This document shows positions 3,297 through 30,107 of a stretch of DNA of 64,000 nt, in pieces. The translations under genes were made by a program, and so were the position numbers. The notes under the pieces were generated by a model. It searched no databases. It was not told where the DNA came from and worked only from the letters and a program-made list of their open reading frames with translations. The DNA is taken from IMG/VR virus record IMGVR_UViG_3300042934_000547, positions 124,001 through 188,000 of that record; one strand, written 5' to 3'. Positions within the stretch are counted from its first letter, which is position 1. Each line of letters opens with the position of its first letter.

Positions 3297-3318
3297 GGGT
3301 TAGGAATTAACCTAACCC
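3297..3318 (-). terminator. Intrinsic terminator after gyrA
   Basis: GGGTTAGG-aattaa-CCTAACCC followed by a T-run on the minus strand. Confidence 0.8.
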
Positions 3319-5672
3319 ATTATTGTGCAATCAAGTAATATAACACCCTTAGATGGAATCAATTTTGTTCCTTTAGAAATACTACTACCAATTTTTATAG
3401 TATCTATAGGTACGCCAATCTCACACTCAGTCGTTTTATAACCAAATGTCTGACACGGATTTTTATAGGCTAATACTTTGAATATTTCATCACCATCGCC
3501 TAACTTAATAAAATTAGCACCAACATTCGCTCTCTTACCATGTTTGATTGATTCAATGTCCAGTCTATTAACGTAACCTTTTCTAGTCACAATCAATACA
3601 CCTTGAGTATCTGCATCCTTAGATATACTTACTCCTTGCATACCAGTACTATTACCCATAGAACGAACACCTTTTGAATGACGTCTTTGTAATGGTATTT
3701 CAGTAGCATTCATAGCCAATCCTTTTTCCCTATCATATATAAATATGATGTCAGAATCTTTAATGAAATCTACATCAACCAGATAGTCATCATTCTCTAG
3801 ATTAATGGCATACATTCCAGCCTTGGAAACATTCATGAAGTCTTTTACATTAACCTTCTTAATATTACCATTATAGGTAAGAAGTAATATATAATTCTTA
3901 CGAACTTTCTTAGCCAGCTCATTTATTACTGAGTCTGTTGTAACATACATAACTTCCGATGTTAAATTCTTAGATATAAATCTTAAATCAACGCCAGTAG
4001 TATTTGGGTCCATCATAGGCATTGTACTAAGTGGAATACTGAATATACTTCCATTCTTACAGAATAATATAATACTATCTCTATTATCTATAAGGGTGGT
4101 GAACTTCGGTGCATCGTTATTAGCAAATGCTCCTAATCCTAGATTTTGATCTATTTTCTTTATAAAGTTATTTTTGGTAATAACCATTTGCATCATACCA
4201 CCACTAACTGCTACAGTTGCTGGATCAGGTATTACTTTACTTCTTCTAGGTCTACCATATTTAACTTTGAATCCATTGAGTTCATTTTTGATCTCGTCAA
4301 ACAGTAGTTTCTCATTATCTAACTTCATCTTTATATTTTCAATTTGAGATGATAGTTCGATTTGATCCACCTTATACCTATCTAATCTGGTCGGAGATAG
4401 ATATTTGAGAGGTGCATTAATTATAAATAATGCCTGATGTTCAGTTATCTTAATCTCTTTAATCAAGAACTCAACTAATTCTAAATCATCCTGCTTTGTT
4501 CCTTTACGAATCTTTTGGATTATATAATCAATATAACCAGATTCCATTACAGTAATAAACCCAGCTTTCTCATGTCGATTTGTTGATAACATTTGAAGTT
4601 TATTGGTATATAATCTATGCTTAGTCATTAATCTAAAGTCAATCCATTTCAATAAATATCCTTTATAAGAGTATCTATCTAATTTCAATCCATCAAGTAA
4701 CTGCATATTAACTGTGTATGTCATCTGTAAATCCGTATGTTTATATAGGATTTCTCTATTGTATTCTGGGTCAGCACCTTTTTTAAGTTCTAACCATAGA
4801 TCTACGTCACGCTCCCCAGATTGATCCTTATAATCTACAACTTGTAGCTTTTTAGCATCTATGAGACCAACAATTCTTTCTAAGATATTATTTAACGTTC
4901 TCATATCTGGAGTTGATTTAATGACCAAAAACGTTTTTTCTTTCTTGGTATCTCTCACAATTTCAATTTTTCCTCGAACACGAAAACTTCCGTGACCAGT
5001 ATTTGATATTGATTTGAAATTTGATTCTATTATATCAGAACCTAATAATTGGTCTGGAGTCAACACTATTGGTGCTGATGGATCATCTATTAATTTAAGT
5101 GTAGCATTTATAACCTCATTTAGATTATGGGCTGGTATATATACTTGTAATCCATATCCTATACCAAAGTGCCCATTAATCAATAATACCGGAGCTGCTG
5201 ACGCAAATGCTTCCGGTTCTTGATAATCCCTATTATACGTTTCAATATAATCTAAAACATTTTTATTGACATCGACATCTCGTACAAACATGTCGATAGC
5301 AAATTCAGATAACCGCATCTCTGTATATCTTGGAGCGGCTTCTTCATCTCCCTGTGAATTACCCCAGTTACCTTGACCAGTAAATAGTGGATAATTTATA
5401 TTGAAATCAGTCATGGAGTTAACTACCGCACTTTGTAATCCTTGATCACCATGTGGGTGGGATATCTCCATCGTTTTACCTATTACTGATTGAGTCTTAA
5501 TAAACTTCTCTCGTTTCATATGATAAATTAAACTACCAAGTAATCGTCGTACAGATACTTTTAATCCGTCTCTATAGTCTGGAGTAATCCTGTCAAAGTT
5601 AACAGATGTTGTATATATCTCTGCATCACGTTCATATGAATTTAAAAGATTTTGTTCAATTATTTTGTCCAT
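3312..5672 (-). CDS. gyrA: DNA gyrase / type IIA topoisomerase subunit A
   Basis: RDGLK, HPHGD, catalytic AAPRYTE, C-terminal pinwheel-type repeats (QRRHSKG). Confidence 0.95.
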   Translation of the reverse strand: MDKIIEQNLLNSYERDAEIYTTSVNFDRITPDYRDGLKVSVRRLLGSLIYHMKREKFIKTQSVIGKTMEISHPHGDQGLQSAVVNSMTDFNINYPLFTGQGNWGNSQGDEEAAPRYTEMRLSEFAIDMFVRDVDVNKNVLDYIETYNRDYQEPEAFASAAPVLLINGHFGIGYGLQVYIPAHNLNEVINATLKLIDDPSAPIVLTPDQLLGSDIIESNFKSISNTGHGSFRVRGKIEIVRDTKKEKTFLVIKSTPDMRTLNNILERIVGLIDAKKLQVVDYKDQSGERDVDLWLELKKGADPEYNREILYKHTDLQMTYTVNMQLLDGLKLDRYSYKGYLLKWIDFRLMTKHRLYTNKLQMLSTNRHEKAGFITVMESGYIDYIIQKIRKGTKQDDLELVEFLIKEIKITEHQALFIINAPLKYLSPTRLDRYKVDQIELSSQIENIKMKLDNEKLLFDEIKNELNGFKVKYGRPRRSKVIPDPATVAVSGGMMQMVITKNNFIKKIDQNLGLGAFANNDAPKFTTLIDNRDSIILFCKNGSIFSIPLSTMPMMDPNTTGVDLRFISKNLTSEVMYVTTDSVINELAKKVRKNYILLLTYNGNIKKVNVKDFMNVSKAGMYAINLENDDYLVDVDFIKDSDIIFIYDREKGLAMNATEIPLQRRHSKGVRSMGNSTGMQGVSISKDADTQGVLIVTRKGYVNRLDIESIKHGKRANVGANFIKLGDGDEIFKVLAYKNPCQTFGYKTTECEIGVPIDTIKIGSSISKGTKLIPSKGVILLDCTIMG

Positions 5673-5684
5673 TTGTTGTTCCTC

Positions 5685-8030
5685 CTATAAATCAAATCGG
5701 CTAACTGAAACAATTCTTTTAGCTAATATAGATTTCTCACTATTCAGTTTATGAATACCATCAATATCCCTCTTAAAGTCATCTGATGTGTATTTAATGA
5801 TAGTTCTAGTATTGATATCAACAGCTGATTCAAATAATCTCTGACCATCCATCTCACCTAAGCCTTTATAACGCTGAAGTGCTGGTATGGATTTATCAAA
5901 GATTGTCATCAATTTAAATAATGTAACTGGTTGATCATTAATGATATAATTGATTTGTTTATCATTAACTTCGTTGATTAAATGGTCCATGTTTTCACAG
6001 AACTTTAAGAATCTTTCATTCATTACTATGAATTGCTGGGTTAAATCAACTTCACCTGTGATCATCACATTACCTGAATCAAGTTTTGAAACTGTGATGA
6101 ATCTATATTCATTTTCTATAGCCTTTTTAAATTTATTGTATGGAAATTTGTAATTTAATATTATACTTTCTAATAATCGTGGATTAACTGCGAAATTCTT
6201 ATTCATCTTAGTCACTTCTGAGACGTAATCTATATTACGTGATAATAAGTCGAGTAATCCAGCATTAGAAAGCTTTTTACCATGAATATCAGTAACAACA
6301 TTCTTCTTTATAAAAGAGTTGTTTACAAAATCCTGATATTCTGTTTTGTTGATAAAATATTCATATTTTCCTTTTTTCTGTTCTATTCCATATAATGGTG
6401 GCATACCAATATATATAAGTCCTGCTTCTAATAGTGGTCTCAAATATACTGCTATAAACATGATGATCAATGTTCGTATATGTGCACCATCACTATCAGC
6501 ATCGGTCATAATTATGATCTTCTTAAACCTACATTTTGCTGGATTACAATCTTTGAGAACTGTATTAGGATTATATCCAAACAATCTAATCATTCCAGAT
6601 ATTTCTGCATTGTCTAAGAATTTATGTTTTGGGGTACTTAGAGCATTAGGTATTTTACCCCTAAGTGGGAATACACCTTGATGAACTTTATCTCTAAAGC
6701 TTTTGATACCACCTTTAGCTGAATTTCCTTCAACTATAAATAACTCTAAGTCCTTATTACCAGTTGGTCTAACATACTTAGATGGTAATCCTCCAGATAA
6801 ACTATTTGTTTCATATTTATCTGCAATCCTCAATGTTTCTGTAGCTAATTTAGCTCTCATATCAGATATATCTTTTAAATATCTACAAATTTTGTTTATT
6901 TCTTTTGGATTTTTTGTTACCCATTCTCCAAAACTACTTTGTACTAAATCAGAAACAAATTTCTTCATGTCAGAGTTAGATAATTCATCTTTTGCCTGAC
7001 CAACAAAGTTTGGTTCTAAGTGAGCTACAGATACAACAGCCCTCAATGTATATAATATATCTTCTCTCTCTATCTTACGTTTAGCGTTAGCTGGTAAGAA
7101 TACTGTATTCATATATTTTTTCAGAAACTTCACTATACCATCTTTAAATCCTTCTATATGCGTACCCTTTGATGTAGGTGTCATATTACTATATGACCGT
7201 TCAATAAAATCTGGAGTTCCTCCAGCATCATAACTAAATACAACGTAAGCTTGCATGAATCCTGTATCAGCAAAGAATTCTATTGGTACAGTAAGTGAAT
7301 TAGCTGTTATTTCTTCAAATTTAGCAGCAACACCTTTCCTATTATCATACACTTCTGATGTCGTACTACCATCTTTGTTATAACAAGTTATATATATCTT
7401 ATTTACATCACTCCTTGGAGTAAGTATAAATAAACTTCCTGTAAGATATCTAATATCCTGACTAGTCAATGTTAGTTGTCCAAGTATTGAGAGTAATGGT
7501 TTAAATTTAACAATTGAACCTTGCATCTTTTGAGGATTCTTGATATCTTCAATTTTTTGAAGTCTTCCATCGATTAATGTCATCCTCTTTGCTTCACCGA
7601 GTCTATAAGATTCAACTATAAAATATTCTGATAAGGCATTAACTACTTTTGCTCCTACTCCATTTAATCCAGATGAATATTCAAATGGTTTCTTTTCATA
7701 GTTTGAGCCTGTATGTTGTGCAGTAAGCATTGACTCCATTTTATCGAATGGAAATCCTCTTCCGTTATCCTCTATAATAACCTCAAATGTTGCTTCATTA
7801 TAGATAACCCTTATTGTATCACACGGTGATGCTTGTTTAACCATTTCGTCTATGGCGTTTTGAAGTATCTCCCTGAACATCTGAAGCATACCTCTATCTT
7901 CTAATGGTCCTAAATACATGCCCGGACGTTTTCTAACCGCTTCAACAAAGTCCTTTAAAGTCTTAATTTCATTACTATAATTCTTAATGTTTTCTATCAT
8001 CTCTTTCGAGAGTTGATGCTTTTCTGCCAT
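5685..8030 (-). CDS. gyrB: DNA gyrase / type IIA topoisomerase subunit B
   Basis: VRKRPGMY, GHKL motifs (NAIDE, DNGRG, GLNGVG), EGNSA, PLRGK, DADSDG, RYKGLGEM; start moved to the ATG after AAGGAG. Confidence 0.95.
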   Translation of the reverse strand: MAEKHQLSKEMIENIKNYSNEIKTLKDFVEAVRKRPGMYLGPLEDRGMLQMFREILQNAIDEMVKQASPCDTIRVIYNEATFEVIIEDNGRGFPFDKMESMLTAQHTGSNYEKKPFEYSSGLNGVGAKVVNALSEYFIVESYRLGEAKRMTLIDGRLQKIEDIKNPQKMQGSIVKFKPLLSILGQLTLTSQDIRYLTGSLFILTPRSDVNKIYITCYNKDGSTTSEVYDNRKGVAAKFEEITANSLTVPIEFFADTGFMQAYVVFSYDAGGTPDFIERSYSNMTPTSKGTHIEGFKDGIVKFLKKYMNTVFLPANAKRKIEREDILYTLRAVVSVAHLEPNFVGQAKDELSNSDMKKFVSDLVQSSFGEWVTKNPKEINKICRYLKDISDMRAKLATETLRIADKYETNSLSGGLPSKYVRPTGNKDLELFIVEGNSAKGGIKSFRDKVHQGVFPLRGKIPNALSTPKHKFLDNAEISGMIRLFGYNPNTVLKDCNPAKCRFKKIIIMTDADSDGAHIRTLIIMFIAVYLRPLLEAGLIYIGMPPLYGIEQKKGKYEYFINKTEYQDFVNNSFIKKNVVTDIHGKKLSNAGLLDLLSRNIDYVSEVTKMNKNFAVNPRLLESIILNYKFPYNKFKKAIENEYRFITVSKLDSGNVMITGEVDLTQQFIVMNERFLKFCENMDHLINEVNDKQINYIINDQPVTLFKLMTIFDKSIPALQRYKGLGEMDGQRLFESAVDINTRTIIKYTSDDFKRDIDGIHKLNSEKSILAKRIVSVSRFDL

Positions 8031-8056
8031 TTGTGATGCTCCTTCCAATAAAAAAT

Positions 8057-8068: not shown

Positions 8069-8120
8069 CACAATAAAAACTAGATGTAAGTCGTTAAACT
8101 TACACCCAGTTTAATTTGTA

Positions 8121-8990
8121 TTAGTCTTCAAATGCTTTTTTATTTGCTGCAACGCCATTATTAGCAGGTGCTGCCTGTTGGTTTCTCATATTGAATCCGT
8201 TATTCGCTGTTTGAAAATTGTTTTGCATTGGATCAGCAGCGAATGGTGTATCATAACCGCCCATACCCATATTCATCATATTTGGATTTTGGTTAGCTCC
8301 GAATTGAACTCCACCTTGTGGCATTCCTTGTGGCATTCCGAATTGAACTCCACCTTGTGGCATTCCCCAATTCTGGTTCATAGCTGGGTTTTGATTAGCA
8401 CCGTAATTCATATTCATTGCCGGATTAGCTCCCATGCCGAAATTGTAGTTTCCGCCTAGTATGCCCTGTAACATAGCAAAGTTGTTGTTATTTGAATGTA
8501 TATTTGTATTCATTGAACTAAATTTACTGAAGCTGTTTATTGCAACTTCATATACTTTAGGTAACTTCTTGATGTATGGTATCATCTGAGCATACACACT
8601 CAAGAAGTCTCCTGCTAAATCAACTCCGAAGAATTTGATATTTTGAAGCAGGAACACAGCTTTATTCACGATATTTTGTACATCTTCTAAGCTGAGATTT
8701 TCCCAAATTGGAAACTGTTCTTTACACCAATTACAGAAGTAAACTGGGAATCCATTCTCATCTACTTTGCCTGTAGCTTCAACAATAAAATTTTGTGCAT
8801 TTTTGTGTGTACATAAAGCAGCAGCCGCTTCCACGTCAGTTACTTCGAATACACCTCTTGATGTTCCTTTTAATAATTCTGCATTCTTTCCTTCCATGGC
8901 AGGATTTTCCATAGTTGGTTTTTGAAACACTGGTGGTGTTGTAACTCCACTATTAAACATAAATCCTGCATTATTGCCAAAATAACTCAT
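8121..8990 (-). CDS. Early protein with Cys/His Zn-binding motif and N/Q/G/M-rich low-complexity tail
   Basis: CTH...CNWC; GMPQGGVQFG repeats; strong RBS; TATATTATA promoter. Confidence 0.75.
   Translation of the reverse strand: MSYFGNNAGFMFNSGVTTPPVFQKPTMENPAMEGKNAELLKGTSRGVFEVTDVEAAAALCTHKNAQNFIVEATGKVDENGFPVYFCNWCKEQFPIWENLSLEDVQNIVNKAVFLLQNIKFFGVDLAGDFLSVYAQMIPYIKKLPKVYEVAINSFSKFSSMNTNIHSNNNNFAMLQGILGGNYNFGMGANPAMNMNYGANQNPAMNQNWGMPQGGVQFGMPQGMPQGGVQFGANQNPNMMNMGMGGYDTPFAADPMQNNFQTANNGFNMRNQQAAPANNGVAANKKAFED
8298..8366. repeat. 30-bp intragenic direct repeat x2 (period 39)
   Basis: TCCGAATTGAACTCCACCTTGTGGCATTCC at 8298-8327 and 8337-8366. Confidence 0.9.
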
Positions 8991-28607: not shown

Positions 28608-30107
28608 CTATGCATTTACTTTATTATAGAATTCAATTAATGAACGTTTGTATTCTGGATCATATTTATCTCTACCCAAATTGATAAAGTTGTTTAAGTT
28701 AACTAATGTATTCTTTGTTGGTAGGTAGTTAACGTATAACAATCCATCATTTCTGTTTATAATCATAGCTCTTCTTGGATTATAAACTAATAATGCTGTT
28801 TGATAGAACTTGTCGTTGATTATCAACTTAACGTTTAATACGTCACCGTCAAAGTCTGCTTGTAGTGATGGCAATATATCAAGTGGAACACCCATTGTGA
28901 AATTATAGCATATTCCAATAACATGCATTTGAATCATACTACCATATTCCAATGTAGGATTTCTGTTTATCATTACTGGAATTCCAAATGGGTATGAGTT
29001 GATAATACTATTAATGATACTTATCAATTCATAATTCTCTTTAAGTCTTCCAACACTCCATATCATGTAAGCATCATTAATACTGATACTTCTTCTATGT
29101 GCAATTATATTTATAATTTTCTGTTGCAACAAATCACACAATGTATAATATGATAGAGTTATTTGGTCAACCTTAAGTGAAGCATCTGGTTTGATAACAT
29201 TTCTTGCTGTAAAGTTATATTTACCACCATATGCTCTCCTTATCAATCCAGTTTTACCTGACAAAATTTCTTCAATATCTGCATATACGTTCATGAACTC
29301 ATCTTGAAGTTTTTGAAGATATTCAGGTATTGATGTTTTATATAGAGTTAATTTATTCCTGTTTATTCTAGCTGTATACATAGCCATATTATTAAAATTA
29401 CCATTGATATCATAATATTCTAATTGTATACCAGAGGTTTTTAATAATCTTAATAATGTAGTATAAACAGGTATACAGCTTGTAAATATTAAGTCTCTAT
29501 TCTTTATGATTTCTTCATATGCATCCTGTTTACTTTGGGTATTAGCCATTTTCTTATAAAATGTAATTATTTCATCGAATCGATTGATGAATTCATATAT
29601 CCCGATTCTAAAGAATGGTTCTTTATCTGGATCTGGAGTCTCTACCGGAATCTCAATTCCATCTGAGTTAAAGTTTTCATCTAGATTCATCATATTATTA
29701 AATGCTTTTTGACCAATAAAACTTTGTATAGTCTTATACATTATTGGATGAATTACTTTATATCCATGCTGTATTACCAACCATCCCGTATAAGCAAAAT
29801 TATCGTCAACAAATTTAACTTTAGTTTTACATTTCGGGCACAGTATTCCTTCATTACTACGTGAACGTAAATTACCACATTCACATTTGTGTCGATCGCC
29901 ATTTGGACTAATATCATCAACACCTCTACCATATCGACTAGAGAATATTCCATCTGGGTCTTTTAATGCTTTTTTGATACCTTGGGCACCAGTAATTATA
30001 AATCCGTTGTCTGTTTCTAAGTCTCGTTTACATTCTTCTTCAAAATTGATTTTTACCAATCTAGATTGGTATTCAATTTCGTTACTATGTCCGTAATCAT
30101 TATACAT
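28608..30107 (-). CDS. Phage multisubunit RNA polymerase beta-prime, N-terminal catalytic fragment (probably non-virion RNAP)
   Basis: GIFS, Zn finger CECG..CPKC, GKTGLIR, NRNPTL, ADFDGD catalytic loop; TATATTATA at 30188-30196. Confidence 0.92.
   Translation of the reverse strand: MYNDYGHSNEIEYQSRLVKINFEEECKRDLETDNGFIITGAQGIKKALKDPDGIFSSRYGRGVDDISPNGDRHKCECGNLRSRSNEGILCPKCKTKVKFVDDNFAYTGWLVIQHGYKVIHPIMYKTIQSFIGQKAFNNMMNLDENFNSDGIEIPVETPDPDKEPFFRIGIYEFINRFDEIITFYKKMANTQSKQDAYEEIIKNRDLIFTSCIPVYTTLLRLLKTSGIQLEYYDINGNFNNMAMYTARINRNKLTLYKTSIPEYLQKLQDEFMNVYADIEEILSGKTGLIRRAYGGKYNFTARNVIKPDASLKVDQITLSYYTLCDLLQQKIINIIAHRRSISINDAYMIWSVGRLKENYELISIINSIINSYPFGIPVMINRNPTLEYGSMIQMHVIGICYNFTMGVPLDILPSLQADFDGDVLNVKLIINDKFYQTALLVYNPRRAMIINRNDGLLYVNYLPTKNTLVNLNNFINLGRDKYDPEYKRSLIEFYNKVNA

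Follow-up and report, generated by a model that had tools for sequence, protein, structure and literature searches.

A jumbo-phage type IIA topoisomerase, probably topoisomerase IV-like, with divergent residues at the quinolone contacts

A 64,000-nucleotide stretch of the virus record IMGVR_UViG_3300042934_000547 (positions 124,001 to 188,000 of that record; hereafter the window) carries two adjacent genes for the subunits of a type IIA topoisomerase. An initial annotation read them as a phage DNA gyrase with quinolone-resistance residues in both subunits. Our analysis suggests that the pair probably encodes a topoisomerase IV (topo IV)-like enzyme of a jumbo phage, in which Gln, Ser and Asn at the quinolone contacts stem from divergence of the lineage rather than from an adaptation to resistance. 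Two lines of evidence carry this reading: (i) the GyrA box is absent from the window protein and all 96 relatives examined; and (ii) one of the contact positions, GyrA 87, belongs to the many cell-conserved positions that vary in the phage family.

In the proposed mechanism, the two genes would supply subunits B and A of a type IIA topoisomerase of phage lineage, whose family is found in ∼200–290 kb jumbo phages. The enzyme would most likely relax and decatenate DNA in an ATP-dependent manner without introducing negative supercoils, as topo IV and T4 topoisomerase II do, because its six-bladed C-terminal domain has lost its blade-1 GyrA box. Its likely role is the relief of topological stress during replication and packaging of a large phage genome. 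Gln, Ser and Asn at the quinolone contacts would reflect lineage divergence in a family where position 87 and many other cell-conserved sites are free to vary. A likely by-product is a weak or absent water–metal ion bridge and, as predicted from it, low sensitivity to classical fluoroquinolones.

The gene pair and its quinolone-contact residues

Subunit A (GyrA/ParC-like; P0001, 786 amino acids (aa)) is encoded at 3312–5672 on the minus strand, as identified by translation, Pfam and PHROG matches, and subunit B (GyrB/ParE-like; 781 aa, database entry P0122) at 5685–8030 on the same strand. Both genes are intact and have strong ribosome-binding sites (RBSs): GGAGG at 8 nt spacing from the ATG in the case of subunit A, and GGAAGGAG ahead of the ATG at 8030, the most likely start of subunit B. 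The B open reading frame (ORF) extends further to a TTG at 8048 (ORF 5685–8048), so that the P0002 numbering used below runs six residues ahead.

By Pfam, the pair has every domain expected of a type IIA topoisomerase with two subunits (HATPase_c, DNA_gyraseB, Toprim, DNA_gyraseB_C and DNA_topoisoIV), with P0001 matching DNA_topoisoIV (1.2e-78) and DNA_gyraseA_C. Both subunits are labelled 'DNA topoisomerase II' by PHROGs (families 551 and 543; 4.5e-99 for P0001 against family 551). The catalytic R115-Y116-T117 of subunit A (5322–5330, minus strand) corresponds to R121-Y122-T123 of Escherichia coli, and its Arg and Tyr are invariant in the clade of related phage proteins. Subunit B retains the equivalents of the ATPase residues E42, N46, D73, G77, Q335 and K337. 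In alignments it also retains those of the Toprim residues E424, E466, R447 (the Arg of the PLRGK motif; 6654–6668, minus strand) and D498, D500 and D502, which form an intact acidic cluster, DADSDG (6486–6503, minus strand). With every catalytic residue in place, we expect an active enzyme.

Helix IV of subunit A reads HPHGDQGLQS (P0001 residues 72–81; 5430–5459, minus strand) and the Toprim motif of subunit B reads EGNSA (P0002 residues 440–444; 6717–6731, minus strand), so that positions 5430 and 6731 are the outer edges of the two motifs. MAFFT alignment with E. coli GyrA and GyrB from NC_000913.3 places GyrA S83 at Q77 (codon 5442–5444), GyrA D87 at S81 (codon 5430–5432) and GyrB D426 at N442 (codon 6723–6725), and the Glu equivalent to GyrB E424 is retained within EGNSA. 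HMMER alignments set HPHGDSSIYE of Staphylococcus aureus GyrA over HPHGDQGLQS and EGDSA of Streptococcus pneumoniae ParE over EGNSA. The alignment register is secure because the flanking HPHGD and EG.SA are nearly invariant. The motifs and replacements that the initial annotation described are exact to the base, and the same equivalences were obtained in every alignment. Since they concern the identity of residues and not a pattern of frequencies, chance plays no part in them.

Absence of the GyrA box

Comparisons were made with three protein sets: (a) 95 clade proteins from a word search that have a residue at columns 83 and 87; (b) a set of 60 distinct GyrA-like genes taken from IMG/VR (69 loci), many of them with an adjoining B gene; and (c) 77 valid cellular GyrAs from GTDB genomes of many phyla (80 genome loci minus L128, L133 and L146, which are wrong-frame ORFs from high-GC genomes).

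The blade-1 GyrA box, Q(R/K)RGG(R/K)G, is a hallmark of all gyrases and is indispensable for supercoiling; its deletion or mutation abolishes supercoiling and leaves decatenation intact (PMC11626157; PMC8216471). At the aligned site (4113–4151, minus strand), subunit A has the blade-1 loop DQNLGLGAFANND, which is 11 residues shorter and contains no basic residue. Neither the window protein nor any of its 96 relatives in the clade (97 members together) carries the box, yet it is present in all 77 cellular GyrAs and in 23 of 23 more distant, cellular-type homologues. E. coli ParC is aligned without a GyrA box. Because the motif that defines supercoiling is absent, the clade should not be called gyrase, and the initial label is not sustained.

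The C-terminal domain of subunit A (residues 486–786; 3315–4217, minus strand) is predicted by AlphaFold to be a six-bladed beta-pinwheel (pLDDT 92.1). Its best match in the PDB is 1wp5, the C-terminal domain of Geobacillus stearothermophilus ParC (TM 0.82), with GyrA C-terminal domains so close behind that the fold search discriminates poorly. The charge of the domain (isoelectric point (pI) 9.06, net +7) was tried as a discriminator between gyrase and ParC and rejected: the pI of the domain is 7.1 in E. coli GyrA, 8.6 in E. coli ParC and 9.2 in Listeria phage LPJP1.

No NCBIfam equivalog assignment was obtained for either subunit among the gyrase and topo IV profiles. The scores lie far below the cut-offs for gyrA (354.5 against 902 bits and 336.3 against 877) and gyrB (348.7 against 882.4 and 382 against 740), and likewise for parC_Gpos (265 against 813), parC_Gneg (206.5 against 629), parE_Gpos (307 against 900) and parE_Gneg (285 against 723). 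A FastTree phylogeny of the catalytic core, with T4 gp52 as its root, tentatively places the phage enzymes apart from cellular GyrA and E. coli ParC, the latter being the sole ParC in the tree; the wrong-frame ORF L133 is misplaced in it. From the sequence comparisons and the structural model we infer a phage-specific lineage that would work like topo IV or T4 topoisomerase II.

Variation at the quinolone-contact positions

Position 83 varies to a similar degree in cells and in the phage clade. The cellular GyrAs have S in 36 cases, T in 19, Q in 7, A in 5, M in 4, V in 3 and others (entropy 2.23 bits), and the clade proteins have S in 33, T in 28, A in 14, Q, I and V in 4 each and others (2.47 bits). 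Gln83, found in 7 of 77 cellular GyrAs (9%), is thus nothing unusual in nature.

Position 87 carries an acidic residue in 73 of the 77 cellular GyrAs; Larkinella bovis, with Ser, and two Cohnella species, with Gln, are among the exceptions. The position is acidic in 59 of the 95 clade proteins and non-acidic in 36 (Fisher p = 1.6e-7 against the cellular set). Among the IMG/VR genes, non-acidic residues are the majority (43 of 60, with 17 acidic; p = 4e-17), and Gly is the most frequent replacement. The entropy of this position is 0.88 bits in cells versus 2.13 bits in the clade. However, 65 of the 224 GyrA positions that are conserved in cells (<1 bit) are highly variable in the clade (>2 bits), and in a ranking of 443 positions by entropy difference, position 87 comes only 122nd. 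This suggests that relaxation in the clade is not focused on the drug pocket. As a selected trait, the 'resistance residues' of the initial annotation therefore find little support: Gln83 is natural in cellular GyrAs, many clade proteins have a non-acidic residue at 87, a position that is unremarkable among the many relaxed ones, and S83Q and D87S are not classical alleles.

GyrB position 426 is more uniform. It is D in 44, E in 3, N in 1 and L in 1 of the 49 clade proteins from the word search (window protein included), and D in 36, N in 2 (the window and its nearest relative, L004) and K in 1 of the 39 paired IMG/VR-type loci; the 72 bacterial B subunits have D in 67 cases and N in 5 (including Metamycoplasma equirhinis). 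L004 shares 47% identity with the window phage in subunit A, has T/T at 83/87 and also reads EGNSA, and its gene order is the same, including a downstream tubulin gene. Because the nearest relative also has EGNSA and a non-acidic 87, this combination appears to be a stable trait of a small sub-lineage and not an assembly error or a recent event.

Two further observations concern the same region of subunit A. Four relatives (P0068, P0069, P0078 and P0085) have an intein (Pfam PF14890; one with an HNH-type domain) exactly between HPHG and the next Asp of helix IV, and inteins probably occupy the quinolone-contact motif at loci L021, L024 and L029 too. In addition, a group of metagenomic cellular-type GyrAs of 835 aa (P0101, P0103, P0104, P0108–P0111, P0113–P0115 and P0117–P0120) has a variant GyrA box, QGRGGVG, with Gly or Leu at 87 and Ser or Gln at 83. 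It appears to be a natural gyrase lineage that is also without the acidic quinolone anchor.

Alternative explanations

Several points weigh against a topo IV-like enzyme shaped by lineage divergence. The gyrase profiles of NCBIfam outscore the ParC and ParE profiles, and GyrA of S. aureus and S. pneumoniae scores above ParC of the same species. Subunit B carries an insertion of ∼140 aa between Toprim and the C-terminal tail (P0002 residues ∼568–710; 5919–6347, minus strand, from the alignment), where Gram-negative GyrB carries an insertion of 170 aa. The C-terminal domain of subunit A is six-bladed and basic, and the tree placement may reflect long-branch attraction. Asn at GyrB 426 is rare, being present in the window protein and a single relative out of 50 clade GyrB sequences, yet it is kept across 47–50% divergence, and such retention could indicate a function. 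Also, relaxed constraint and diversifying selection are indistinguishable at such divergence.

An arms race, which we regard as unlikely, would explain the substitutions by natural poisons from hosts, mobile elements or microbes that diversify the drug- and toxin-contact face of the DNA gate, made up of helix IV, the residue that precedes the catalytic Arg-Tyr pair and the Asp of Toprim EGDSA, with the window phage as one escape combination. Positions 87 and 120 are conserved in cells and very variable in the clade, the equivalents of R462 and W751 differ too (Pro and Phe), and mobile elements hold many protein inhibitors of gyrase (PMC10886550). By contrast, the same pattern is seen at 65 of the 224 cell-conserved positions, mostly far from the drug pocket, and position 83 is not more variable than in cells. 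Moreover, among the differences listed between ∼95%-identical strains, most are spaced at three-base intervals, as under purifying selection, and none falls in 5430–5459. A genuine escape variant, in which Gln, Ser and Asn would permit phage replication despite a poisoned host gyrase, with the phage itself as a possible source of the poison, is a rather improbable form of this idea.

It is doubtful, more so than the arms race, that loss of the acid at GyrA 87 and Asp426-to-Asn in GyrB form a co-adapted pair that compensate for each other, e.g. in charge or metal near the scissile phosphate, and would thus be linked in function rather than drifting separately. Both changes occur in both members of the sub-lineage (Gln/Ser with Asn in the window, Thr/Thr with Asn in L004), and the sole other locus with a non-acidic 426, L025 (Lys), has Gly at 87. 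These are, however, only two or three independent observations, whereas 26 loci pair a non-acidic 87 with Asp426, and D426N alone is tolerated in E. coli (PMC4838383).

We give an equally low probability to the original proposal of a true, negatively supercoiling phage gyrase with adaptive resistance residues in both subunits. The residue changes are real, the gyrase profiles score best, the insertion in subunit B lies at a gyrase-typical site, and a GyrA box does exist in the A subunit of some cultured phages, such as Listeria phage LPJP1 and Bacillus phage Goe21. Nevertheless, the box is deleted across the whole clade and the equivalog cut-offs are missed widely; cellular gyrases with Gln83 occur naturally, and the clade often has a non-acidic 87. 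Synthetic quinolones are an implausible selector for so deep a lineage from soil or wastewater, in which the substitution pattern is shared at 47% identity.

Lastly, an impaired or repurposed enzyme (e.g. a DNA-binding or clamp protein), for which drug sensitivity would be irrelevant, is very improbable: both subunits are highly divergent (∼27–30% identity to solved enzymes) and the Asp of EGDSA is otherwise nearly universal, but the residues for ATP hydrolysis, metal binding and DNA cleavage are all kept, and the intact, adjacent genes with strong RBSs form a pair that is conserved in dozens of jumbo phage genomes.

Predicted response to topoisomerase inhibitors

The Ser of helix IV and the acidic residue four positions on are the anchors of the quinolone water–metal ion bridge, and their loss leads to resistance (PMC3632122; PMC9917921). 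The gyrB D426N mutation is a standard quinolone-resistance allele of E. coli and is tolerated alone (PMC4838383). The drug-contact reasoning of the initial annotation agrees with these sources and stands, in contrast to its terms 'gyrase' and 'resistance residues' and to the evasion of other gyrase poisons that it suggested. Classical fluoroquinolones would probably bind the phage enzyme poorly, because it has no carboxylate at 87 and Asn at 426. Some doubt attaches to this prediction, since hydrogen bonds to water remain possible for Gln and Ser, and not all quinolone classes depend on the bridge.

Quinolones kill by trapping cleavage complexes and are dominant poisons. Harm would still arise wherever a sensitive gyrase or topo IV of the host acts on the phage DNA, so that insensitivity of the phage enzyme would be recessive. 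Because of this dominance, the step from an insensitive enzyme to a drug-proof phage is unsupported. If phages of this group were combined with fluoroquinolones, their own topoisomerase would probably not be the drug target, while host gyrase, turned into a dominant poison, would still matter.

Contacts of other poisons also differ. The equivalent of R462, which contacts CcdB, is Pro; that of W751, which is related to MccB17, is Phe; and that of Met120 in the pocket of the novel bacterial topoisomerase inhibitors is Pro. Position 120, just before the catalytic Arg-Tyr, has 0.30 bits in cells versus 2.85 in the clade and ranks 15th of 443. All of these positions are variable across the clade. 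With identity at only ∼28%, such differences are expected and say little.

Equivalents of D73 and R136, which contact aminocoumarins, are kept in the window protein, the R136 column being read from HMMER and a smaller alignment because it looked unreliable in the large MAFFT alignment. At R136, most clade members, the nearest relative included, have Ile, Val or Tyr, and the window protein has Arg. With respect to aminocoumarins it is thus the window phage that is conventional, unlike most of its clade. Because both equivalents are kept, we see no reason to predict insensitivity to novobiocin.

Genome context, source and further features

The virus record is 231,975 bp long with direct terminal repeats, and the window has ∼30% G+C. 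The record encodes the beta subunit of a phage multisubunit RNA polymerase (28608–30107 of the window), Dda-like and DnaB-like helicases and a tubulin homologue (PhuZ/TubZ-like; G000:C1:118948–119424) that lies ∼4.6 kb before the window start. Therefore, from its length, RNA polymerase, helicases and tubulin, the source is a jumbo phage. The tubulin gene is situated a few genes downstream of the topoisomerase pair, as it also is in L004 (L004:9059–10171). Tubulin together with the RNA polymerase beta subunit hints at a phiKZ-like, possibly nucleus-forming jumbo phage. A Pfam search of ten neighbouring large ORFs was almost blank and gave no phage-nucleus shell protein, no further search for chimallin being made.

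A soil-metagenome contig contains the entire 4.7-kb stretch of the gene pair with zero differences, although this run may be the assembly's own source and so is not independent. A strain of ∼94–95% identity is present in a wastewater metagenome, and soil or wastewater is the best reading of the phage's origin. The ∼94–95% strain also occurs in another run ('organism A') at a word depth of ∼2,000–2,500, which might reflect an enrichment or a host culture, and it has a 2-nt deletion in the intergenic spacer (5679). Three clade members (P0012, P0015 and P0095) are filed under bacterial metagenome-assembled genomes (MAGs; Peptostreptococcaceae, Izemoplasmatales and Herbinix), two of them on contigs of 213–246 kb. 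They look like complete genomes of jumbo phages that ended up in the bins of low-GC MAGs. There is at best a weak hint of Bacillota-type hosts.

The insertion of subunit B shows no sequence similarity to that of E. coli GyrB (BLASTP E 0.18) and matches no Pfam family. It is also present in B subunits of the whole phage clade (∼780–820 aa) and in GyrB of Listeria phage LPJP1. Just upstream of the RBS of subunit B (∼8085–8110, minus strand), an inverted repeat (gtaagt...acttac) and the T-rich stretch behind it look like the terminator of the preceding gene (8121–8990).

Significance

That phages encode type II topoisomerases has long been known, and jumbo-phage genes are routinely labelled 'gyrase'. 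The enzyme belongs to the known phage-encoded type IIA topoisomerases; the missing GyrA box of its clade is a point of annotation and not a new mechanism. Our results imply that (i) a large metagenomic clade should not be named gyrase; and (ii) a reading of resistance from positions of the quinolone resistance-determining region is not transferable to enzymes so divergent, because these positions vary freely in the family. The natural EGNSA variant, which is rare, is a small curiosity for enzymologists of the Toprim pocket. No long-standing question is opened by any of these points.

Comparison with known systems

The phage enzyme shares with bacterial gyrase (E. coli, S. aureus and Bacillus subtilis) the GHKL ATPase, transducer, Toprim and tail of the B subunit, the winged helix, tower, coiled coil and six-bladed pinwheel of the A subunit, and the catalytic residues. 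Bacterial gyrases are also its best sequence matches among solved structures (∼27–30% identity). By contrast, it has no GyrA box, and Gln, Ser and Asn take the place of the quinolone contacts.

Among phages, a megablast search with the 4.7-kb region returned no match in 50,697 phage records, and the protein-level matches in phage records are all at ≤28% identity. Among the titles and abstracts listed by literature searches on phage-encoded gyrases, none addresses this clade or its missing GyrA box. Listeria phage LPJP1, Bacillus phage vB_BsuM-Goe21 and Lactococcus phage 949 have adjacent gyrB/gyrA-like genes with ∼26–27% identity to P0001, and all three keep EGDSA. The A subunits of LPJP1 and Goe21 retain a GyrA box (VQKRGGKG), which suggests that these two enzymes could be real gyrases, whereas phage 949 is without the box like the window phage. 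In Goe21 (L078; PBS1-like), the gyrA-like gene is annotated in two pieces, gyrA_1 and gyrA_2 (2499–2717 and 4103–6205), with a 335-aa ORF between them; the break lies just before HPHGD and looks like a mobile insertion.

T4 topoisomerase II (gp39/gp60/gp52) is likewise a phage-encoded, ATP-dependent type IIA enzyme. It falls into PHROGs 551 and 543, and its EGDSA and catalytic Tyr align with the corresponding sites of the window enzyme. The similarity is marginal (E ∼4e-13), and the shared PHROG matches show kinship at the family level only. The T4 enzyme relaxes DNA without supercoiling and is a poor quinolone target; quinolones are not mentioned in the T4 topoisomerase structure paper. In contrast to the window enzyme, with its unsplit B chain and the 300-aa six-bladed C-terminal domain of subunit A, T4 gp52 has 442 aa and no pinwheel, and the T4 B subunit, which keeps EGDSA, is divided between gp39 and gp60.

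The phage enzyme resembles topo IV in its two subunits, a C-terminal domain without a GyrA box, the fold match to 1wp5 and the predicted relaxation and decatenation. It differs in scoring below the ParC and ParE equivalog cut-offs, in its distant sequence and in the insertion of subunit B, ParE proteins being described as without species-specific insertions (PMC8216471). The C-terminal domain of Aquifex aeolicus 'GyrA' (PDB 3no0), a cellular enzyme, is the structural match of rank 15. Though annotated as a gyrase, this enzyme reportedly acts as a topo IV, a precedent in which it is said to be the C-terminal domain that decides.

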